From positions 3,100,001 to 3,164,000 of the forward strand of contig JBLDXI010000015.1 of the NCBI GenBank assembly GCA_047495785.1: a DNA stretch of 64,000 nucleotides. The letters are read 5' to 3'. The number at the start of each line of letters is the position of its first letter. Position 1 is the first letter of the stretch. The translations under genes and the position numbers were made by a program. Under the pieces are notes generated by a model. That model was not told the DNA's origin and did no database searches. It saw only the letters and a list, made by a program, of their open reading frames with translations. Positions 3 through 14,705 of this stretch are shown here, in pieces. Origin of the DNA: Lepidodermella squamata (taxonomy: Eukaryota; Animalia; Gastrotricha).

Positions 3-986
3 GATTTGCCAGGTATACCTGGGCTATTCATGGCAACCCTTTTCAGCGCGGCCCTTAGTACCATTTCTTCTGGAATCAACGGTCTAGCCGCTGTTACATG
101 TCGTGACTACGGCGTTGAAGAATGGCTAAGAAACCGCGGCCATCCCGAGGGAAGAATCACAATGATCGCTAAATTTATTTCAATCCTATACGGGGCTCTT
201 TGCATAGTACTGATTTTTGTCATTCAATACCTACCTGGTCTGCTAGACTCAGCTCTAGCCCTGTTTGGCGCCTTGGGTGGGCCATTACTCGGCATTTATT
301 GCTGCGGAATTTTCCTGCCTTGGATCAATAAATACGGCGCTTTAGCCGGGTTATTATCAGCGTTATTCCTAACAGTCTGGATGACGGTTGGCGAGAAGGC
401 GAGTCAACACATCTCGCAGGCACAACGCGGCCCGAGTTTGTCTACAATGGCCTGTGATGCTCATTTCCTTCAGACGTCCCGGGCCCATGACGCCACGCCT
501 GAAGCTGCGGCTGGGTTGTATCTTAACCACTTCATTCCAGATAGGAAGACAGATTTCGGCCGAATCTCTGGACTCGAGAATCTTTACTCGATTTCTTACC
601 TCTACCTCTCAATTGTTGGCATCAGGTTTGCGAAAAATCAGCATTCAGTATTCATAATTTTTCAATTTTTTTCTAGCGTGTCGGCCTCGGTCGGCATTGT
701 TGTTAGCGCTTTCACAGGCTGGACTCACAACGTCGAGCTTCAATCGAATTTATTCCACCCAGCCGTTGTTCGATTGGCTGAAAAATACGGCTGGAAAACG
801 TGGAAATCACCTGCCCTTGAGGCTAAAGGCACCCTGCCGTCTATTCCAAGTCAAATGGTTATGCCTGGCGATGTCAGCCAAGAGATTTCACTTGAAACTT
901 ACGATAATGGTGATAATGAAACTAAATCAAATAATATTGTGATCAAGCGGGTTAACAATAAGTCTGACGATGAATGCCGTGTGTAA
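3..986 (+). CDS. SLC5 sodium:solute symporter (SMCT/SMVT-like), 3' part; gene starts upstream of the window
   Basis: DLPGIPGLF..LFSAALSTISSGINGLAAV, GALGGPLLGIY and LYSISYLY are typical SLC5A6/8/12 motifs. A 51-nt stop-free GT-AG intron at 626-676 is read through by the ORF track. Confidence 0.9.
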   Translation, partial: DLPGIPGLFMATLFSAALSTISSGINGLAAVTCRDYGVEEWLRNRGHPEGRITMIAKFISILYGALCIVLIFVIQYLPGLLDSALALFGALGGPLLGIYCCGIFLPWINKYGALAGLLSALFLTVWMTVGEKASQHISQAQRGPSLSTMACDAHFLQTSRAHDATPEAAAGLYLNHFIPDRKTDFGRISGLENLYSISYLYLSIVGIRFAKNQHSVFIIFQFFSSVSASVGIVVSAFTGWTHNVELQSNLFHPAVVRLAEKYGWKTWKSPALEAKGTLPSIPSQMVMPGDVSQEISLETYDNGDNETKSNNIVIKRVNNKSDDECRV

Positions 987-1128
987 AATTATCAAAATAA
1001 TCTGGCCACTAGTCTGATCCTATTCAAGTTGCTTTCCTAACCCTTTAGTATTTTTTAAATAAAATTTTCAAAATTAATGGAACCTTCTGGTTTCAGCCGT
1101 ATTTTTTTATTTAATTTTTTTTTCGGCG

Positions 1129-2361
1129 CTAGTTTCCGGTGTAATTTGAAGCGTAGCGTGACGGAATGAGGCCACGCCGGCTGCCGTACTCCTCCGCATT
1201 ATTCGCCGCTTCGTTGATGGACGTTGATGATGCTGACAAGGGTTGCATTTTGTAGTCGTGATTATGCCGATTCAACAGTTGTCTGCGAATAAGGAAAGCC
1301 ACGCTGAGCGCTATCACCGCAGTGATAACCAAAGATCCGAGAATTATCAGCGTAATCGCCCACCAGGTTGAAAGCGTTGCGTGATGATGGCCCTCGTTAA
1401 CTCGGCTATCATGGCAGCAAACTAATTTTGAATTAAAAATTTTTTTAATGTAGATTTGAGATATTAATTGCGCAACGAAAAACGAGTATGAAGCTGAAAG
1501 AAAAATGAGCAAACTATTTATTAAGCTGGCAACGATCTCGTTTCAGTGTGCTCTCATAGGATTCATTGATCAAACGAGAACAGACAATTAATTCATTTAT
1601 CATTAATTAATTTTAATTATCAATTAATTTTTAATTAATTATTATTGATTTCTCAAATTCAAAATAATTTTATAATTAATTTTATCAATTTGCTATGTTG
1701 CAATTTTCGAAATTTCGCTGCTCTAATGTCACTGTAGGAGAAATTGTTGATATTAATATTTTACTCTTATATCTTTGCTCTATTGTCGTTGCGCACTTCT
1801 TGTTTATGCAAAATCAATATTGCCTCGAATGATTATGAAGAATGATTATTAGAAAATTTAAAACTTACAATGGCCCTTTTCGCATGATATTTGACATTGC
1901 GACAGCCTTCGATGCCAATCTCGAGCCGAACAAGGTCCGTAAACTCCAGGCGATACAAGTGTCTCTTCTTTATTAGTTAAGAACACATATTCTCGCCCTG
2001 AATTGACTTTAGAAATGACCGAATCGCAAAATTTCGGCCCATTTTGGTCTTCGCAGGTCAGGGTCGAGGTTTGGCTGTATCTGCAATCGCCGCAGGCTAG
2101 ATCGCCACTGCAGAAGCCGACCTGAAACGACCAGTTTCCGGCTGAACCAGCAGCTGAGTTGGCGATGAAAATTCCCAGATGAACGTCGAGCCCGTTTTCA
2201 AAGGCTTGCAACAGATCTTGACATGTTACAGCGGCTTCACATGAGATGCTGTGAGACTCATTTTCGAATGATGCCACCGAGAGATTCACCGTTAAAAATG
2301 TTAGCGCGATGATTGAAATTAACCAAGTTGCTGTCATCAAAACTTTCCCACAGAATCGCAT
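1129..2361 (-). CDS. Type I membrane protein: signal peptide, Cys-rich ectodomain (possibly NTR/TIMP/NtA-like), one TM, short tail
   Basis: Exon 2361-1869 (GTAAG donor at 1868) joins in frame to exon 1421-1129 across an AT-rich 447-nt intron. TM is WWAITLIILGSLVITAVIALSVAFLI. The fold guess is weak. Confidence 0.65.
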
Positions 2362-3344
2362 TTGTGACTTATAAGGGGTTGTTTAAACATTGAGCGGGAT
2401 TATTATTATTATTATTCGTCATTATTAAGGTGGAAATATTGAGTGGATTTCTTATCTTATCGCCATTGTTCAGATAACAAAACCAGATCGTGGGCTTTTA
2501 AACGAAAAATCGCTGTAATTAATCCCTTTATGCGATGAGTTAGAAACAAAATTAATTAGCTTGCTAGAAGATCAGATGAAAAGATGAGATGATATAGAAA
2601 AATGTACGCCTATAACGAAAATTCTGATCCTAACTTGTTTCATCGGATTTTTCCTTAATCGTACAAGTCATGCGAAACGTTGCACATTGCGGATACTCCA
2701 TTCATGTTCCCAATTACGGGCCCCTATGAAAATTTATCATCACGTAGCCCGATTTCGTCACTTTACTTCGAAATTCTGGTAATTTAAAATTCGACGGAAA
2801 ATTGTCAATTTTGCCGCCGATTTCTTTGATCTGGGGTTAGCAAAGTTCAGGAGAGGCTCCCATCAAGGGTTGCAAGCACAGTCCGACGCAGCAGTATTCA
2901 GTATTCATCTCATGTAAAAGGATTAGTAGTCAAATTATTTATAGGTCATGAATTCGTCAATTGAGTAAAAAGTCAAACTCACATTAATCTTACTAAACGC
3001 CATTTTGCTATTGCTTTTGTACGTGAGATTGTGCAAAACTTGAATTTCACTCATTGCCCTCGAATAAAAGGCTGTTATTATTTATCGCCATGAATATTAT
3101 AGTACGCGTGCATGGGTAAATAAGGCGAAATTAAGGTGGATGCAGGTCGCTAAGCAAACAAATGAATAAAATGTGTCAGTTGATAAAAACTTGAACTGAA
3201 GTCAGGATGACGCTACATCGTCAAATACGGCATAACAAGTTCCTCTGAAGCTACTTGAAAAAACGACACGTTTGTTTAAACATAGGTCAATTTTTGCCTC
3301 TAATGAGGACAAATATTATATCATCTTCGATTTCCACCCTAGAA

Positions 3345-6300
3345 ATGGTTATTTTGATTTTTCTATTGAGTAATCTCTTCATCTCGACATCAGCCCAACC
3401 TCGTCAGATTGCTAGCATTAAGGCGATTGAATGCCAATTCGCAACTTACTTTTGCGGCTGGACTTTCTTGCCTGATGCTTCGAGAAACTCATCTCAGTCA
3501 CTGACGTGGTTGATCACCAAAGGCGGGCCGAAAAGTCAATTTAAAACATTTGCAGCAACTCACCTCATCGGCGATCCTTCTACAAGTGGGCGATCTTTCA
3601 GGACTGATACGGATGAAAAGCTAAAAGCCGCCTTAATCAGCCCACTCATTCCAGAAATCGATAGTCGAAGGCCGCGGTCAATGTGCTTTTCACTCATGTA
3701 TCAAGTCAGTGAAGACTCATCGTTATCGATTCATAAGACAATCGATGGCAACGAAACTCTGGATGATGAAGCGTTTCTCTATTCAAGCGATAACAATACC
3801 ATCGGACGATGGCTTAAGGTTCAGATAACAATTCGAGCCGCCCACGCTTTCCGACTTAAAATCGAAGCGGTGAGTCGGGTGGTTGATGGGGCTGTGAAAG
3901 TTGCGGCGGCCAAGTTATGGCTCGGTCACTGCCTACAGACTAACAATGACGTTTTCAAGCCACTGGAACCGATGACGAAATCGCGAGGTGCTGCGTCGAT
4001 GTGGAAGTTCGCCCTCTGGCCGAATGCAACTGTGCCGTATGAAATTGAGCCGGGTTCGAATTTCAGCGAAACTGCGCACCCTGCTCTGGCGCAGGCCATC
4101 GCCCAGGTCATGGCATTGACCTGCGTGAAATTCGTACCACGCTCTAATGAGGATGATTTTTTGATGTTCAAGCACGTTGAGGGCGAACTTTGCCGCTCAA
4201 CGGTTGGTTACCTGAGTGGGCAGCAGGACGCTGAGTTGGGTGATAAGTGCTTGAGAAACCTTGGAGAAATGATGGTGAGCTGAGACCAATTGAAGAGATA
4301 CTTGTTCATTTTGCAAATTTTCAGCATTTAGTCATGCATGTCCTCGGCTTCAGTCACGAGCATCAACGAGTCGATCGAGATGAGTTCATCAAAATAGATT
4401 ACACGAATGTTCAGGTTGAAGAATATTATCATCTTTCATCTTAACTTATTGATATTTGTCGATGACAGAAAAAAGGAGCCAACCAGTTGGCTATCGAAGC
4501 CAATGTTTTGATGCGGAAGGGTGCTTACGACTATGCCTCAGTTACCCACTTTCGGCCATATGCTTTGGCTATCGACAGAACGAAACCAACTATCATGGCG
4601 GTTCGAGACACTCCTCAGGCAAGGCTGATGGGCCAACGTTATGGTTTGTCTTATGGCGACATTGCTGCAATCAAGTTCGTTGATTTGGCATAGGATTGTT
4701 GACAATTTTCCTCATTTTATTAACATTTCTAGCCACGCCTATGATTGCCCCATCGATTTCATGCCTGGTAGTTTTCATTCAACAATCTCTTGCTTGTTAA
4801 TCTTCTAACCATTTGTTCTACAGTATGTGCACCCGCTTGTCAAAATGGTGGATCATGTCAGGGACCGAATTTCTGTTCCTGCCCGACCGGATTCACAGGC
4901 CAAGCTTGTCAACTGAAATTGCAAATGGCCATAACGACCGATGAACCGCTGCCGTGCCGGAACGGTGGGACCTATGTCTCATCGAATGCCTGCTTGTGTG
5001 CGGAAGGTTGGACAGGATTGAAGTGTGGTAGGTGTTGAAGTTGACCAGAATAATCTAATAATCCACCTTGAATTCTTTCTAGAAACACCCGTTTGCGTAT
5101 TTCCATGTCAAAACGGAGGCTATTGCTTTGCGCCTGGAGTATGCACATGCCGTAAGTTACTAGTTACTCGGCATTCATTACTAAAACTTTAATATCGCCA
5201 TTTTTCAGCTCCTGACTTTATGGGTCCTGCCTGTGAGATGCGAAATTCCATAGCTCGATCTAACTGCTCAAGACACACTGATTGTAATGCTCACAACGGC
5301 GGGGGGTTCTGTACGAAAGCTGGCAAGTGTTTGTGCACCGAAAACTGGTTTGGCGCCCGATGCAACGAACCAATCTGCCCGGGTGGCTGTGGCGAAAATT
5401 CTGAATGCACTGCCCCAGGGGTGTGCTCTTGCAGTAAGCTTTTGCCCCGCTTTGTATCTCTACTCTACAATATTTGCTTCTTTTTTTCCAGAGCCGGGTT
5501 TTGCAGGGCCAGACTGTTTCCTGCCGCCATCAACTTGTCCAGGAGGTTGCGGAGTGAATGGGTAACTTTGGTTATGCATGAATGAACAACTTGACAATGT
5601 TTGGTTTTATAGAGATTGCATTGGGCCTGGGGTTTGCCGATGTAAGCATGGATGGTCGGGACTTGGTTGCTCAATTCCTAGTCACTTCTGTACACCTCGT
5701 AAGTCCGACTTCAGTTTTGGAAATCTCGAAATATGTTCACATTTCTGTCAAGGATGCATCCATGGTCAATGTACTGGAATGGTGAGTTGAAGCCTGGATC
5801 ATAATTGGGATCATAGGTGTCACTTTAATTCCTTTCTTTCAGAACGAATGTACGTGCGACCCTGGTTACACTGGAATTGCGTGTGAACAAGTGGCTTATT
5901 CACCATTCGGCATCGGCAGTCCTTGTCAATTTTCAGCCCAGTGCAACGTCAACAATTCCCAGTAGGCTTGTTTCAAACATGTATCACTTTTACTTACCTT
6001 TCATTTCCCGCCGTTATTTAGCTGTGACCTGATTTCACTGCAATGCAAAAGCGGCATATGTTTGTGCAATCCTGGCTACGTGCTCGTCAATGGCCGGTGC
6101 TTGTTGTCGCGGAGTCTCGACGAGCCGTGCGACTTGCGCGAGACCACGTGCATCGACAACACGTTCTGTACAAACGACGGTCGATGCGCGTGTCGCGAGG
6201 GCTTCAAAAGAGGCCCCCTTAACAAGTGCATCAGCCCAGCGGCTACGAAACGGTACGGCGACCCTTGTGTGTCACCTAATGAGTGCTATCACGACCTCAC

Positions 6301-6931: not shown

Positions 6932-7193
6932 TAGCTGCGTAGCTTCTTATTTTTTTGTAATTTATAGAAAAGGAAAATGCCGCTTCAAGATAATAAAAGC
7001 GCTAAAATCCGGTAATTCTGTGTCAAGTCGTGGGCGTCTGTGCGTCACGTATCACATTCGTTCGCAATGCAATTTTATCGCTATAAATTGTGACAATGAC
7101 AACAAGATAAGATAGTGGTTTTAAGGTTATTTTCAACCTGAAATTGCGACCTAGTTCTTACCATTTCGTCCAATATTGGAGGCAACCCTATCT

Positions 7194-8204
7194 ATGTCGT
7201 TCAGGGCCTTAATGCGGTATACACTGGTTGTATTGTTCGCCCTGGTTGTAGCAGCTCGGAATGCCAGCATATCTGAAGTCAGGAAAACGACCCTAGAAGA
7301 TCACTGCATAATTCCCAGTGGTAGAATTTCTGACCAGATTCTTCTGCCGTGGATATCACGCGACAGTCAGGCCGCGTGCTCCCACTGTTGTCACGGCAAT
7401 GATGCTCTTGAACTTCTCGATCAATATGGCCGGACTCCTTTAATGGAAGCAGCGAGAACTGGTAATATTGACCTAGCTAGGAACCTTATCAGTCAAGGTG
7501 CTGATATCAACGCTCAACGTCAATCAGATCAATTTACAGCGCTCATTTTTGCGGCTATAAATGGTCATCACGCAATTGTGGAATTGTTACTAAGAAGGGG
7601 TGCTGTAGTGTCTTCTAAAACTCGAGAGGGTAACACTGCACTAACTATAGCAGCAAAAATGGGTCGCAAAAAGTGTGTACAGTTATTGCTGGAATTCGGA
7701 GCTGAAGTCGGCGAACAGGATAATGATGGCCATAACTCTCTGATGTTTGCTGCATTTGGCTGCCATTCGAGTGTGGTTAAATTGCTGCTTGAAAACTCCG
7801 CTAATCCCGACGTAAGGCTGCATAATGGCCGGACAGCTTTAATAATCGCGGCTGGAATAGATTGCAGCGAAGTAGTTCATTTACTGCTTGAATACGGCGC
7901 AGAAGTCGACGCGAAAGGTAGGGATGGCTATACGGCTTTGATCTGGGCAGCGATGCATGGTTATCGAGAAGCAGCTGGTATGCTACTCAACCATGGCGCT
8001 GATGTGAATGCGAGAACTGCTGGTGGAAACACTGCCCTGTTATCTGCGGCCATGTATGGCCATAAAGCTGTGGTCAAAATGTTGTTAAGGCGTGGGGCTG
8101 ATGCTACCTTGCGAAACAAAGCTGGTTATACCGCGCTGCAAGTGTCGCAAGATCAGGAGGTTGCCATTATTTTGAAGAAATTTCTCACGAAATCGAAACC
8201 TTAA
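7194..8204 (+). CDS. Intronless ankyrin-repeat protein (~8 repeats) with N-terminal signal peptide
   Basis: MRYTLVVLFALVVAARNA leader followed by near-consensus GxTAL..AA..GH..VV.LLL..GADVNA repeats. ATG is at 7194 or 7212. Confidence 0.88.
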   Translation: MSFRALMRYTLVVLFALVVAARNASISEVRKTTLEDHCIIPSGRISDQILLPWISRDSQAACSHCCHGNDALELLDQYGRTPLMEAARTGNIDLARNLISQGADINAQRQSDQFTALIFAAINGHHAIVELLLRRGAVVSSKTREGNTALTIAAKMGRKKCVQLLLEFGAEVGEQDNDGHNSLMFAAFGCHSSVVKLLLENSANPDVRLHNGRTALIIAAGIDCSEVVHLLLEYGAEVDAKGRDGYTALIWAAMHGYREAAGMLLNHGADVNARTAGGNTALLSAAMYGHKAVVKMLLRRGADATLRNKAGYTALQVSQDQEVAIILKKFLTKSKP

Positions 8205-8713: not shown

Positions 8714-11700
8714 ATGGAAAACCTCGATTCCCAAGAGTCGATAAAATTTGGTACTATATAAATCCTCAGTTGTGTGACTTTTTGGTAAAAGTTATTTCTT
8801 TTCAGCGGACAGACAGCTTCGTATTTTTATTAGCTGCACATGGAGTCACAGGAAGAAAGAAGTCGAAGAAATCGCAGATAAGTTGGAGAGACAAACTAAT
8901 GGTAAAATACGATTTTCCTTGTTCAATGAATAACGATAATAAACTCATTTTTTAGCATCCGGCAAACTCATATTTGACGTATGGCGTGATCAGAAGCGGT
9001 TAGCTGATCATCTATATGTTGAATTAGCAGATGTAATTTCTTGAAATATTCAAAATTCGCTTTACGAAATATATTCCTTCTAGACCATTCTAACCGGTGA
9101 CGTTTTTCTAGCATTCGTGGATGACGAATATCAGCACAATAGCGAAATTAGCAAAGGTGAACTTTTGTACGCCATCGAACTCAAGAAGCGGGTCGTTATT
9201 GCCAAGTTAGCTAAGCTATCTCCTGGGTGGCTTGAGGCGATCAAGCGAGACGTTGCCTGGATCGATTACCCACAAGCCTGTCCGTCTCAAGATATTTACG
9301 TGAAAATCGTTGAAGAAATCGTCAAATTTTACATGCCGAAATCACCGACTCGGGGACCCAAGTTGAATATTTCATTTTATAAAATCAGGAAAAATATAAT
9401 ACCTTTCCCACAGAGAAAAAGCCAATCCTGTATTATCGAACCATTTGGGTGCGAAGAAAAACGATAAACCCGTCACTGATAGACTGAAAGCGGCGTTGAA
9501 TTTGCTTCGATTCCGAGTTCGATCATGTATCTATGGTTTCTTATTATTTCAACGTGGGGATCTGGTCAGACTTCAGGATCTAGCGTGTATGTGGGGAATG
9601 GAAAGCGTAGAAGAGGTCTTTCAACTCATAAGATCTTGCAACATCAGCGTCGATTGCATTAAGCTGGATCAGTCAAAAAGCTGTGCTGTTCTTGACGATG
9701 TTTTCTATGACGCGGCAATAAGTTCTGCTTGCGATGACTGGAAATTACCGAGCAGTCCCCACGTTATGGAAGAAATCTGCTGTAAAATCGCCAAGGGTGC
9801 CTCAAAAATGCCATCGACTCGTCCTTCAAAAGTCGGCGAGTCTAGTTACGAGGAAATCATGCTCTTCCTGGCATTGCGAAAACGGAGACGACAGGTTATA
9901 AACCGTGCAATATCTGGCCTCAATGCTAGAAGCCTCGCTGACATTTGCTGTTCGAAATCGAAGTCTCCCGACGAATTCGACATGACATTTTTGCACCTTC
10001 TTTACCACACCGTATGGAACGACGATGTGAAACATCATCCCAACAATACTTCAATCGGATGCATGCATTCCTATCACATGATAGAGAAAATATTGCTGAA
10101 ACTGAAGAGAGGCGGGGTGAATTTCGCGAGCTGCTTTGACGGCGTCAATCTTCTGACTGAACCAAGCAGCGACGGCGGATCGTTTTTGGGCGATGTCCTT
10201 TCTGATGCTGACATTGATGCATATCGATGGGATAGAGAACCTCTGCTGAGACTCTTATCGCCATGGAAGCATTCTTACCAAGAACAAAGATGGAAAGAAA
10301 TGCTGCTCAACGATAGTCAAACGTCGCTGAGTATTATCATGGCGATAGGAGGTGAGTCGGGGCCCTCTTTAGACGAAAGTTTCTTCGAGCGTGGCGCAGA
10401 GGCTAAAAGTGCTGCTCTTCTAGCTGCTGCTCGGACTGGCAACAAGGCGCAATTTGTTCGGCTTCATGACAAATTCGAACCAGACTGCGACCCGATGACT
10501 TTTCTCAACGAATCCGATCAAACTTGTCTCCATCTAGCAGCAGCCAATGGTCACATCGAAATAGCAGAGTTTATCATTAATCGACACTCTAACAGACTAG
10601 AATCAGCCTTGAACTCAACCGATCGTGATGGGAGAAACCCAGTGATGCTCGCTGCTCATAATGGCCACTTGGAATTGGTGAAACTTCTAGCATCTAAAAC
10701 GAGCAACAAAAGTTTGAAGGCTAAGGACAAAAACGGTCACACTGCGCTCGCATTAGCTGTCATGCACGGCTACTTTGGAATTGTTGAATTTTTGTTTAAC
10801 GAATATAGCCACGCGTTGAATCTGATCGACAATCAGAATTTATCGGTTTTATGCCTTTCGGCCGCTGCTGGCTATCAAGATGTGTTCGAGTTCGTCTATC
10901 GAAAGAAAAAGGCAACTTTGGGCGCTGGAGAAATCGCAACCGCTTTGTCCCTATCAGCAGAACATGGCTACATGGGTATCGTTAAATTCCTAATTGAAAG
11001 ACATCCTGAGATTGCGGAGGCAGTTAACGAAGAAGATCGGACCGCGCTTATGGCTGCCGCACAACGAGGACGTCTCGAGATTGTTCAATACCTGGCAGAT
11101 CAGTGGGAGGAGGGTCTGAAATTGAAAGACTGTAACGGCGACACTGCTTTGATGCATGCAGCTGCGAAAGGCCATGTTGAAACAGTTAGAATCCTCTGCC
11201 TCAAATTTGTCTTCGCGATTCACTGGCACAATGCCAATTACCAGCGCCCTCTCTCAGTCGCAGCGGAAAATGGTCATATCGATGCAGTTAGATTTCTTTT
11301 CGAGATATACCCCGAGGCTTCAAAGTTTTTTGATGCCCAAGGTCATTCACCTCTAACGTCTGCAGTTGCTAACGGTCACCTTAATGTAGCGGAATATTTG
11401 TTTAAAGCTCAACCAGCGACACTAAAAGCTCTTGACCCATTAAGGAGGAACGCTTTGCATCTTGCAGCTCTCGGGGGTGAGATCGAAGTAGTCAAATTCG
11501 TAAGCGAAAACATTGACGAAACCATGCGAAACGCGGTTGATATCGACGGCCGTTCTCCTGTTATGCTGGCAGCCTTGAATGGCCACACTGAGGTGGTCGA
11601 GTACCTGTTCAGACCCGAAAAGGCTCGCCAAATCGATCGGGAGGGGCAGAATGGTTTTATGCTTGCATCGATCGGTGGCAGTGTCGATGTTTTGAAATGC

Positions 11701-12249
11701 ATGCATAGTAAATCTAAGGATCTGTTATATCAACGAGACAAATACGGTCGAACTGCTTTAATTCTAGCAGCACTGCATGGAAATCTCAAGGCAGTCAAAT
11801 TTCTTTCCGACGCCGATGATCGGCCTAACATGAAGTTGATCTGCGAACAAGATTTCAATGGAAGGACAGCATGTATTGCTGCATCACAGCATGGATATCT
11901 TGAAATAGTGAAACTGCTCTTCGAAATCTGCCCAGAAGTTATGGATATAGCTGATTTCGATGGCCGGTCTTGTTTAATGGCCGCAGCTGCCAATGGTTTC
12001 ATAGAACTGGTAGAGTATCTGATCGACAAGCCTCGAGACGCGGCAATGCTTCGCGATAGAAACGACCGAACCGCTCTCGCGTACTCAGCGATGAACGGAA
12101 ATCTTCAAGTGAGCAAGTTCTTGTATGAGCGTTACAACTATGCCATCAACATTCGGGACAGCTCGGGCCTAACAGTCGGTGAACTCGCGGAATTGAACGG
12201 ACATTCTGAGTTGGCTCATTTTCTTACGGAAAAGGCTCGGAAAAAGTGA
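8714..12249 (+). CDS. TIR (TIR_2-like) + helical linker + ~17-18 ankyrin repeats, ~1107 aa, 5 exons
   Basis: Exons 8714-8750, 8806-8901, 8956-9032, 9084-9361 and 9414-12249 join in frame via GT-AG introns of 51-55 nt. Spliced N-terminus reads RIFISCTWS..EVEEIADKLE..FDVWRD..VFLAFVDDEYQHNSEISKGELLYAIELKKRVV. Confidence 0.85.
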
Positions 12250-12329: not shown

Positions 12330-14705
12330 TTAATCATTAGCTATTGAAGTGCTAAATCCAGTTACTGCAGAATCAATATAATTCTGCCTTCGTTTGCTCC
12401 ATAACGGGAGGTAAAACGTAAAGTTAGCCGAGATTGAGTAAACCAGCATGCCAAAAGCTGCCGCCAGGATTTGATTGTTTTCACCTGATGAAGCGAGCAG
12501 AAATGTGAGAAGAGGGAAAACGCATAGAATCTCCACAGAGTTGTAAGCAGCCCATGAGACGGCCTTAATTTCCATGTCGCTTAGAAATTGATTCCTCTGT
12601 CTCCTTAAAATTGCTGCGATGCAACAAGCCGCGAATATCATCAGCAAATTAGCTACGATGAATCCTGCTAACCATGAGCTCCAGGTCTCGGAAACACATG
12701 TTGTTACCAGAATCTCAAAGTATGACCCTGCAACTTCGTCATAGATAGGGGCAGAAATAGTTTCACGAATCGTCAAAGGGTCTGATAGAATGCAAGCTAA
12801 TGCGCATATAAATGCACCTGCAGACACAGAAGTGGCAATTAAGGTTTGTATCTTCGATTGATGTAGAAAGGTCGATTGAAACATCCGCGGATCCCTCAGG
12901 TTTACAGACATCGCCGAGTTTCTTATGCTGGAAGTTGTCCGCCTGCTATGCCTGCTTAATTTCGGCATCAAATTATTCAGTTGCAGCCATTGCGCTGTTT
13001 TCCTTAAAGAGTAGAGCCTTGAGAAAATGGCTGAGTTCAACACGGTGACCCCAACGAAGCTAAACAATGGTCGGATACAGCATAGCGTTTCTTTGAGATA
13101 CGCTACTTCCAACACAAGCATGAACGCATCGAGATTCAGCAGAAAGCAACCTACAAATACGACAAAATTCGTTGCAGGATGATTGAAAACTAGCAGTTGG
13201 GAGGTCAACGTTTTGTTTTGCTTCAGCCTTATAAGCGTGAAAACCTGAAATACGCCTGCAACAACAGACAAGGAAGCAATCACGCCGAAAGCTGACATCG
13301 GAAATTCAACTGAAATGCGCCGAATATTCAGCAGGTCTTGAGGAGGTAGCCCATTAGGCGTGAACCAAGCTGCCCCTTGGAATTTAACGAGTTCATAAGT
13401 GCTGGCATTCAAAACGGTCCGATAATCAGTGTCTTTTCGTGTCACTTTGTAAGCATAACGATTTGAGCCATTAAGCCATTGGATAATCCACATTTCTTCA
13501 TCGTCGAGTTCCAAACGCTCCGAATATTTCAGCCGGCCGATTCTTATCCCATTGAAATCCAGATTTGCCGCTGAGTCATTCACAACCTTTGCAACTAAGA
13601 CAGGATTAGACGAGAAATCTCTCAGTGTCAAGTTGAATTTAGAGATCAAGACTTCTTCGCTTCTGTTGAGTGCTAGAATAGCTGCCATTGTCGCATCATG
13701 GCATAAGTGGCGCTGAGGATAATCGGGTACTAACTGCCCTGCCAAGTTATTCGAAACCTTGTCTTCAAACCGATCTAAATCGTAACCCAGTGGGGTTTTG
13801 CCGTAATTTTTTACCGCTCCCAGCCAACTGCCAATAAAAAAGGTTCCCTTCAACTGCTCGAAAAGCATTTCTCGGCTGCAACCCGGGGGCAATGTCAGAT
13901 AAGGACTGTCAGCAGCGAAGTAAGTGTAGAAGTTTGGAAAGAAGGCATATTGAGGTGGGCGCATGTTTCTTTCGTGGGAGAAGCATAGAAATTTGATAGT
14001 CAACGAAACTTGACCATGGGCGAAGACAATAAATCTCGCTTTGCTGGCCTTGACATCGTCGATAATATCGTAAGTGACATCAGATTCGCTTCCGTAATAC
14101 AAGACCGATATGTCGTTTTCGATCAGACCCTTTTGCAATGACTGTCCGAGCATATAATCATTTGCATTTGTCGAAAAGGTGAAAATTCCCATCTGGCCCC
14201 ACTTTCCGACTTGTTTCGCGAATAAAATAACGGCGATGGCCAGATTTTCATAGGGCATTTGAACGCGGTAAAGGCTTGAAAAAGTTTGACGCTTCCCTAT
14301 CAGGAATGGACCTGTGCAACCCTCGGCGAATTGAGCGAAGCCTAGTTTCCTTGTCACAAAGGCAACACTTTGACATGCCAATGAAGGTCCGACAACCACC
14401 GGTGAAAGGTAGGAGCTGTTATCACGGCGGTCATCGAATTCTCTGATAAAGTTGATGAAACTTTGAGGGGCTTTCAAAGCACTGCGGCCTTCATCGCGAA
14501 CGTTCAACACGATATGGTAATTACGAAGGATGTCGTCCCTAGAGTTAGCCACTTCTACAACGACGTCTGATGCAGCTTTGCACGCTTTGGCATTCGAAGG
14601 TTCTTGCCCGGTCAACGGCATCAGACTCAACAGCGACAAATCGATTTTTTTCGCTGAAACCATGTTGATCGTGTTGAATATTACAAAACAAATGCTTGGA
14701 CGCAT
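12330..14705 (-). CDS. GABA-B-like class C GPCR, subfamily A copy 1 (intronless)
   Basis: Signal peptide, Venus-flytrap-like ectodomain (LSLMPLTG..A..V.N.R.DIL..Y), seven hydrophobic helices, no Cys-rich linker domain; 791 aa. Confidence 0.88.
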   Translation of the reverse strand: MRPSICFVIFNTINMVSAKKIDLSLLSLMPLTGQEPSNAKACKAASDVVVEVANSRDDILRNYHIVLNVRDEGRSALKAPQSFINFIREFDDRRDNSSYLSPVVVGPSLACQSVAFVTRKLGFAQFAEGCTGPFLIGKRQTFSSLYRVQMPYENLAIAVILFAKQVGKWGQMGIFTFSTNANDYMLGQSLQKGLIENDISVLYYGSESDVTYDIIDDVKASKARFIVFAHGQVSLTIKFLCFSHERNMRPPQYAFFPNFYTYFAADSPYLTLPPGCSREMLFEQLKGTFFIGSWLGAVKNYGKTPLGYDLDRFEDKVSNNLAGQLVPDYPQRHLCHDATMAAILALNRSEEVLISKFNLTLRDFSSNPVLVAKVVNDSAANLDFNGIRIGRLKYSERLELDDEEMWIIQWLNGSNRYAYKVTRKDTDYRTVLNASTYELVKFQGAAWFTPNGLPPQDLLNIRRISVEFPMSAFGVIASLSVVAGVFQVFTLIRLKQNKTLTSQLLVFNHPATNFVVFVGCFLLNLDAFMLVLEVAYLKETLCCIRPLFSFVGVTVLNSAIFSRLYSLRKTAQWLQLNNLMPKLSRHSRRTTSSIRNSAMSVNLRDPRMFQSTFLHQSKIQTLIATSVSAGAFICALACILSDPLTIRETISAPIYDEVAGSYFEILVTTCVSETWSSWLAGFIVANLLMIFAACCIAAILRRQRNQFLSDMEIKAVSWAAYNSVEILCVFPLLTFLLASSGENNQILAAAFGMLVYSISANFTFYLPLWSKRRQNYIDSAVTGFSTSIAND

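Follow-up and report, generated by a model that had tools for sequence, protein, structure and literature searches.

What is a protein that has the outline of an NLR receptor, with a TIR effector at one end and an ankyrin sensor at the other, and carries no NTPase between them? The question is raised by a gene of the gastrotrich Lepidodermella squamata located at positions 8714-12249 (+) of the window analyzed here, a stretch of 64,000 nucleotides (nt) from contig JBLDXI010000015.1 (assembly GCA_047495785.1, positions 3,100,001 to 3,164,000), to whose forward strand all coordinates refer. We propose as the probable answer that this is an intact, constrained gene for a cytosolic protein of 1107 amino acids (aa), with the architecture TIR(E96)-WHD-HD2-ANK18 (a TIR domain with glutamate 96, a winged-helix domain or WHD, an HD2-like helical domain and 18 ankyrin repeats), and that it belongs to a TIR-NB-ARC-ankyrin family of which it has lost the P-loop domain and ARC1. 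The first-pass annotation of this DNA, made from the letters alone, had already described an NTPase-less, NLR-like protein in which a TIR effector is combined with an ankyrin sensor, and that outline held, since a TIR_2 match and a WHD-HD2 linker were found and no NTPase was. It had also counted about 17-18 ankyrin repeats and seen neither a transmembrane segment nor an obvious P-loop, all of which agrees with our results. The repeats number 18, of which 17 were recognized by a self-built repeat hidden Markov model (HMM) and one is an N-terminal cap (Pfam Ank_2, E 3e-99). A hydropathy scan of the protein gave no transmembrane-like segment, the best 19-aa value (1.6) lying within an ankyrin repeat, and a transmembrane receptor was ruled out on this ground. 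Pfam found no SAM or ARM domain in the protein, and the TIR is N-terminal, not placed as in the ARM-SAM-SAM-TIR order of SARM1.

The linker and the missing NTPase

The stretch that joins the TIR to the ankyrin array had been described as about 280 aa of unrecognized helical sequence. It is indeed helical, but it measures about 325 aa (165-490) and can be recognized: sequence comparisons and structural models support the assignment of aa 184-475 as the WHD and HD2-like part of the NB-ARC (Apaf-1-type) STAND module. An exhaustive phmmer search of the linker against 1.84 billion representatives returned P0001 (E 3e-23), P0002 (E 6e-8) and P0003 (E 3e-7), the first being an open reading frame (ORF) called in prokaryote style on two metagenome contigs of animal-like character, L001 and L002, from different assemblies. 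The context of the two other relatives is informative. In P0002 the linker homologue (aa 362-617) is directly preceded by a Pfam NB-ARC domain (aa 111-332, E 7e-7, P-loop GESGVGKT) and followed by an ankyrin array, and 5' of the P0002 ORF the contig L003 encodes the initial half of a TIR, making this gene a TIR-NB-ARC-WHD-ANK. On the contig of P0003 (L007), the exon opens with ..CCGLPLMANLL.., the GLPL motif of ARC1, directly before the linker homologue. A WHD-type motif, Y.FL.F......V..LA..W, is common to all four sequences and takes the form YGFLLF..V...DLA..WG in the Lepidodermella gene.

A structure prediction of the linker, suggested by the first-pass annotation, was carried out with AlphaFold (AF2) on the four-sequence alignment and gave a moderate model of the WHD-HD2-like type, in which a winged helix with the order H-H-E-H-H-E-E is followed by a helical domain. 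Foldseek placed Apaf-1, CED-4 and plant NLRs among the best rows for this model, with weak E values (0.01-0.4), while VIA-align superposed it on residues 360-593 of Apaf-1 (Z 10.1, 193 aligned), on residues 373-487 of CED-4 (Z 9.4, root-mean-square deviation 2.6-2.9) and on the WHDs of wheat, NRC, ADR1, NRG1 and RPP1 (Z 6-8). An Atlas shape search returned mainly NB-ARC or related STAND ATPases, at TM values of 0.39-0.48. Because these moderate structural scores agree with the sequence context, we take the linker to be, in all probability, a WHD-HD2 unit.

Searches of other kinds gave no relative of this region. The Pfam, PADLOC and NCBIfam collections hold no match to aa 165-490, and the last two gave no match to P0001 and only P-loop-level matches to P0002. 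Word-index searches with the linker, with aa 1-640 of P0002 and with exon 4 found only the query itself, the family being absent from the annotated proteomes within reach; a scan of JGI metagenomes for the linker motif yielded 134 pattern matches, none of them related, and the linker profile had one chance match, to AP2, among PDB sequences. The TIR-NB-ARC-ankyrin proteins appear to be a rare, unannotated animal family, for which P0002/L003 and P0003/L007 give independent evidence.

Neither a Walker A (GxxxxGK[ST]) nor a Walker B motif occurs in aa 1-500, and Pfam gave no NB-ARC or AAA match on the protein, which therefore is not itself an NB-ARC protein. A hidden NB-ARC exon was ruled out by a tblastn search of the P0002 NB-ARC against the whole window, whose best row (E 0.63) fell in an unrelated place. 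ARC1 is missing as well: no GLPL motif was found in the gene, in which only about 20 residues separate TIR and WHD, versus GHPL in P0002 and GLPL in the P0003 gene. The position of the ADP-contacting MHD histidine of the WHD, a column inferred from motif comparison, would be occupied by Asp in the Lepidodermella gene (L-D-D), by Gln in P0001 (I-Q-Q) and P0002, and by His in P0003 only (I-H-Q).

The spliced gene of contig L001, which corresponds to P0001, is collinear with the Lepidodermella gene (13-1100 versus 8-1094, 31 % identity, E 4e-163) and likewise has neither the nucleotide-binding domain (NBD) nor ARC1, and its linker is far closer to that of our gene than are the linkers of the NB-ARC-bearing relatives. 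Because this collinear homologue from another organism is also devoid of the NTPase, the loss would be an old one, and the distribution fits a single old loss of NBD and ARC1. Contig L003 (ENA ERZ23486787) holds at 185-5187 a complete TIR-NB-ARC-WHD-ankyrin gene of 1617 aa, in exons 185-406 and 556-5187, and the P0001 gene, which has no NTPase, is found on contig L002 of the same assembly, so that the NTPase-bearing and the NTPase-less form may coexist in a single organism.

Gene model and selection

The ORFs at 9117-9467 and 9445-12249 occupy different frames, and a three-frame translation combined with a list of GT and AG sites left one in-frame splice model only, with five exons and a product of 1107 aa (Table 1). 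The first-pass annotation had joined three small exons to exon 4, and that part of its model was confirmed in frame; it had not stated the fourth intron, which is required because the exon-4 ORF and the large ORF differ in frame and which is the sole GT/AG pair connecting the two. All the introns have a pyrimidine-rich 3' end. The beginning of the gene is delimited by a stop codon lying in frame five codons 5' of the ATG, and exon 1 has a counterpart in the L001 gene, namely a first exon of 10 aa with the same phase at its end and placed before an Ala codon. Were intron 4 retained, exons 1-4 would run to the stop at 9465-9467 and code for a TIR-only protein of about 198 aa, a possible alternative isoform.

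Table 1. Parts of the TIR-ankyrin gene in the window; a slash marks the exon-intron boundary, and domain assignments are predictions
Feature	Position	Strand	Description
Exon 1	8714..8750	+	ATG at 8714; aa 1-12 and base 1 of codon 13; donor TTG/GTACTA
Intron 1	8751..8805	+	55 nt, GT-AG, phase 1
Exon 2	8806..8901	+	TIR beta-A RIFISC and alpha-A
Intron 2	8902..8955	+	54 nt, GT-AG, phase 1
Exon 3	8956..9032	+	TIR beta-B LIFDVWRD and alpha-B; supported by TIR_2 profile alignments
Intron 3	9033..9083	+	51 nt, GT-AG, phase 0
Exon 4	9084..9361	+	TIR beta-C to alpha-E; motif SEISKGELLYA
Glu96 codon	9159..9161	+	GAA; catalytic-position glutamate of TIR
Intron 4	9362..9413	+	52 nt, GT-AG, phase 2; joins TIR to WHD
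Exon 5	9414..12249	+	aa 164-1107 and stop codon
Winged-helix domain	9472..9693	+	aa 184-257; probable ARC2/WHD equivalent of NB-ARC STAND proteins
Helical domain, HD2/APAF1_C-like	9697..10347	+	aa 259-475; AF2 model, VIA, Atlas shape search
Array of 18 ankyrin repeats	10402..12246	+	aa ~494-1107; Pfam Ank_2, repeat HMM

The proposed junctions rest on conserved intron positions, on intron-less homologues and on the pattern of polymorphism. Introns 1 and 2 are matched in position and phase in the L001 gene, the site of the second reading ..QKN/A.. versus ..QTN/A.. in the comparison of the two genes, in the same phase. At the sites of introns 3 and 4 the L001 gene has no intron and its ORF reads on without a change of protein register, the distance from the end of the TIR to the WHD motif being 44 versus 45 residues in the comparison of P0001 with our gene; at the site of intron 3 an intron does occur in the L003 gene, a more remote relative. 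Furthermore, codons 9414-9480 are conserved as protein, yet they lie 5' of the first ATG of their frame and are therefore reached by splicing.

The alternative that the model is an artifact, either because a TIR-only gene with its stop at 9465-9467 is followed by a separate ankyrin gene or because an unseen NB-ARC exon is spliced in, has in its favor that without intron 4 the TIR frame does end there and that the junctions have no RNA support. It is opposed by the conservation of 9414-9480 with P0001 in spite of its location 5' of the first ATG, by P0001 itself, whose single unbroken ORF passes from the TIR to an equally spaced WHD, by the mere 52 nt between exons 4 and 5, and by the blank tblastn search of the window, and we regard such a mis-joined model as poorly supported and the least probable of the explanations considered.

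The pattern of polymorphism is the third line of support for the junctions. In sequencing run X2 a second haplotype is present at about half the depth, with eight differences inside the 51-nt intron 3, and in the exon bases that flank this intron the allelic differences (9026, 9092 and 9098) are all synonymous. Among the 32 exonic allelic differences listed, 18 are synonymous and 14 non-synonymous, for 734 synonymous and 2587 non-synonymous sites, which gives a ratio of non-synonymous to synonymous polymorphism (pN/pS) of about 0.22 (binomial P 9e-5), so purifying selection acts on a gene that is intact. The second haplotype of X2 is strongly diverged, with differences in 9026-9098, 10449-10533, 10949-11012 and 11520-11616, and indicates a highly heterozygous diploid source. 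The joints between opposite strands seen in run X1 were rejected as assembly artifacts of low-depth contigs.

These data also bear on whether the locus is a decaying remnant, namely a TIR-NB-ARC-ankyrin paralogue turning into a pseudogene after an internal deletion. Such a fate would fit with the loss of the family's NTPase core and the lack of transcript support at the locus, and is contradicted by a frame of 1107 codons unbroken across five exons, by the pN/pS value and by the same NTPase-less, collinear form in a 31 %-identical homologue from two independent metagenome assemblies. Because a homologue at this level of identity shares it, the NTPase-less arrangement would have been kept over a long divergence. 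A decaying copy is accordingly very unlikely and, like the mis-joined model, poorly supported, and an intact gene retained without its NTPase is the reading that we carry forward.

The TIR domain and its glutamate

Enzymatic TIRs, such as those of SARM1, plant NLRs and Thoeris, use the Glu of the WCxxE motif, and the TIR_2 type is usually tied to enzymatic TIRs. The TIR motifs quoted by the first-pass annotation are all present in the spliced model (RIFISC at aa 18-23, DVWRD at 52-56 and FLAFVDDEYQHNSEISKGELLYA at 78-100). The spliced domain was scanned in pieces against Pfam TIR_2 (PF13676, curated cut-off 28 bits): exon 2 alone aligned with profile positions 1-23 (16.3 bits, E 0.014), residues 1-135 of P0001 with positions 36-92 (E 0.003) and L003:556-900 with positions 48-111 (E 2.6e-4), the second halves of these two homologues scoring 18.4 and 21.9 bits (profile 36-111). 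The language-model features of exon 4 have a similarity of 0.93 to clusters annotated TIR_2. A profile of the TIR second halves, searched against PDB with E values up to 10, retrieved a single chain, the CRISPR-associated TIR Cat1 (E 0.66), at ..CWDEL, and exon 4 alone gave only chance matches among PDB sequences.

A reference set of bona fide TIR_2 domains was obtained by a tblastn search of the L003 half against plasmids, in which three annotated TIR proteins stood among seven weak matches, and these three bacterial domains score 86-104 bits with Pfam TIR_2. An HMM built on them gave 24.2 bits to the spliced aa 1-165, the best of 1000 shuffles reaching 6.1 bits, 38.0 bits to the L003 gene and 11.2 bits to the closest homologue, the P0001 gene. 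With hhalign, an alignment of three family members matched the three bacterial domains at a probability of 96.9 % (E 1.6e-10) over aa 19-132, collinearly across exons 2, 3 and 4. The glutamate at position 96 aligns with the conserved C-x-x-E Glu of the bacterial domains and with DEL of the Cat1 TIR, and does not vary among the three family members; as had been noticed at the outset, the Glu is present, in the catalytic-position column, with WC replaced by IS. Together, these comparisons support the view that aa ~19-132 form a TIR_2-type TIR with a catalytic-position Glu.

Several observations weigh against the reading of the locus as a spliced TIR-WHD-HD2-ankyrin receptor derived from an NB-ARC protein. 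Every Pfam TIR_2 match of a piece is in register but below the 28 bits of the cut-off; the residues before Glu96 are Ile-Ser, versus Trp-Cys in many NADase TIRs; and the AlphaFold model of exon 4 alone (92 aa, half a domain) has a pLDDT of 45.9, its order E-H-E-...-H being compatible with a TIR and not probative. As for the linker, just three relatives exist among the 1.84 billion representatives, its model, made from four sequences, is of moderate confidence (pLDDT 68.8, rising to about 80 over its first 130 residues), and a Z of about 10 for the helical domain is in the range where chance arrangements arise. The locus is covered by two sequencing runs, both of them sets of DNA-like contigs in which splice joints are absent, and no transcript confirms the junctions. 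Finally, no oligomerization device is evident in the protein.

Two of these points, the change of the W-C of the WCxxE-type motif to I-S and the absence of an oligomerization module, could also be read in favor of a protein with the same architecture whose TIR acts not as an enzyme but as a scaffold or adaptor, of the MyD88 or TLR type, recruiting other TIR proteins without cleaving NAD+. The poor score of the closest homologue's TIR with the bacterial TIR_2 profile (11.2 bits) points in the same direction, as it suggests relaxed conservation in the NTPase-less branch. On the other side are the invariance of the Glu in three members and its alignment with the Glu of bacterial TIR_2 domains and Cat1, as well as the TIR_2 type of the domain, which general knowledge links to enzymatic TIRs. 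We consider a scaffold TIR somewhat unlikely, and continue with the intact receptor-like protein and a TIR that could be enzymatic.

Possible mode of action

TIR enzymes normally need an oligomerization device. Because the ATP-driven oligomerization engine, the NBD, is missing from this protein, clustering of its TIR would have to come from elsewhere. The ankyrin array would serve as the recognition surface for a ligand or a partner, and the WHD-HD2 remnant would be a rigid connector or clamp that positions the TIR relative to this sensor. Output would then arise from self-association of the TIR, most likely as NAD+-derived signaling or NAD+ depletion, the clustering being brought about either by a ligand acting as a template or by docking on the TIR or WHD surfaces of full-length paralogues. 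Such docking could make the protein a sensor partner or a damper of full-length receptors, as truncated plant NLRs are. That the locus codes for an NTPase-independent, STAND-derived immune protein in which the ankyrin sensor and the WHD-HD2 clamp gate a TIR NADase directly, with no nucleotide switch, or for a dedicated partner or damper in oligomers of its full-length paralogues, an animal parallel to regulation by truncated plant NLRs that arose independently of plants, is a tentative proposal and, taken as a whole, an unlikely one.

Comparison with known systems

The closest comparison is with the TIR-NB-ARC-ankyrin family itself (P0002/L003 and P0003/L007), with which the gene shares a TIR_2-type head with its Glu, a homologous WHD-HD2 (E 6e-8 and 3e-7), a long ankyrin array and one common intron position, and from which it differs by the absence of the NBD and ARC1 (Walker A, GLPL) and by the Asp at the position of the MHD histidine. 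Plant TIR-NLRs, with their TIR-NB-ARC-LRR order (LRR, leucine-rich repeat), also have an N-terminal TIR with a Glu at the catalytic position and a WHD that folds alike (Z 6.1-6.4 for RPP1 and WRR4A). However, our gene is from an animal and has ankyrin instead of LRR, and common descent of the architecture is not implied. Among the truncated plant NLRs (TN/TX, NRG1C), NRG1C starts at its WHD (Z 7.6) and likewise has no NBD; unlike the Lepidodermella protein, which keeps its TIR, it keeps neither TIR nor NTPase. NRG1C, the known precedent for a sensor partner or damper of this sort, is a truncated helper that antagonizes its full-length neighbors NRG1A/B (bioRxiv 10.1101/2021.01.27.428547; PMC12177489).

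In structure, aa 184-475 (WHD and HD2) come closest to Apaf-1, CED-4 and Dark, although the TIR protein has no CARD, NBD-HD1 or WD40 and the identity is about 10 %. SARM1 resembles it in being a cytosolic animal protein in which a helical-repeat regulatory or sensor domain is combined with a TIR with a catalytic-type Glu, whereas the domain order is reversed, the SAM octamerization domain is absent from the TIR protein, ankyrin repeats take the place of ARM repeats and its TIR belongs to the TIR_2 type; SARM1 was absent from the results of all the searches made on the gene. In fungal NLRs (WHD_GPIID/DUF7791 followed by ankyrin), a WHD also stands directly before an ankyrin sensor, and they are the nearest clusters to the linker in language-model features (0.81, a lead only), but they keep a NACHT or NB-ARC domain and have no significant sequence match to the linker.

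Neighboring genes

Upstream of the gene, the ORF 7176-8204 (+) codes for 342 aa, of which the N-terminus is hydrophobic and resembles a signal or anchor; about eight ankyrin repeats come after it (Pfam Ank_2, E 5e-64). A fusion of this ORF with the TIR gene was considered and rejected, as it stops 510 nt upstream and an in-frame stop lies just before the ATG of exon 1. It is a separate gene, and ankyrin proteins do not usually bear a secretory or membrane anchor. Downstream, at 12330-14705 (-), there is a single-exon gene of 791 aa resembling class C G-protein-coupled receptors (ANF_receptor, E 9e-10), which is convergent with the TIR gene, 80 nt separating the two stop codons; an exact-sequence look-up found no record of this receptor.

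Significance

Surveys of invertebrate immunity have described NB-ARC or NACHT proteins with TPR, WD40 and ANK repeats, and many orphan TIR architectures (PMC6321704, PMC5094078, PMC8260672), and the terms TIR-ANK and TIR-NB-ARC-ANK were not met in the literature searched. The locus is best filed as an NTPase-less member, retaining the WHD-HD2, of the STAND/NLR-like TIR receptors. TIR-NB-ARC receptors are a hallmark of plant immunity, and an animal family of the same logic is, to our knowledge, barely documented. The gene amounts to a natural deletion experiment, in which the ATP-driven switch and oligomerization engine is gone, yet selection has preserved the TIR, the WHD-HD2 and the sensor in two lineages or more. 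An active protein would reveal how control of a TIR effector works when no nucleotide switch is present; a regulatory one would mean that animals resemble plants in tuning full-length NLRs with truncated ones.

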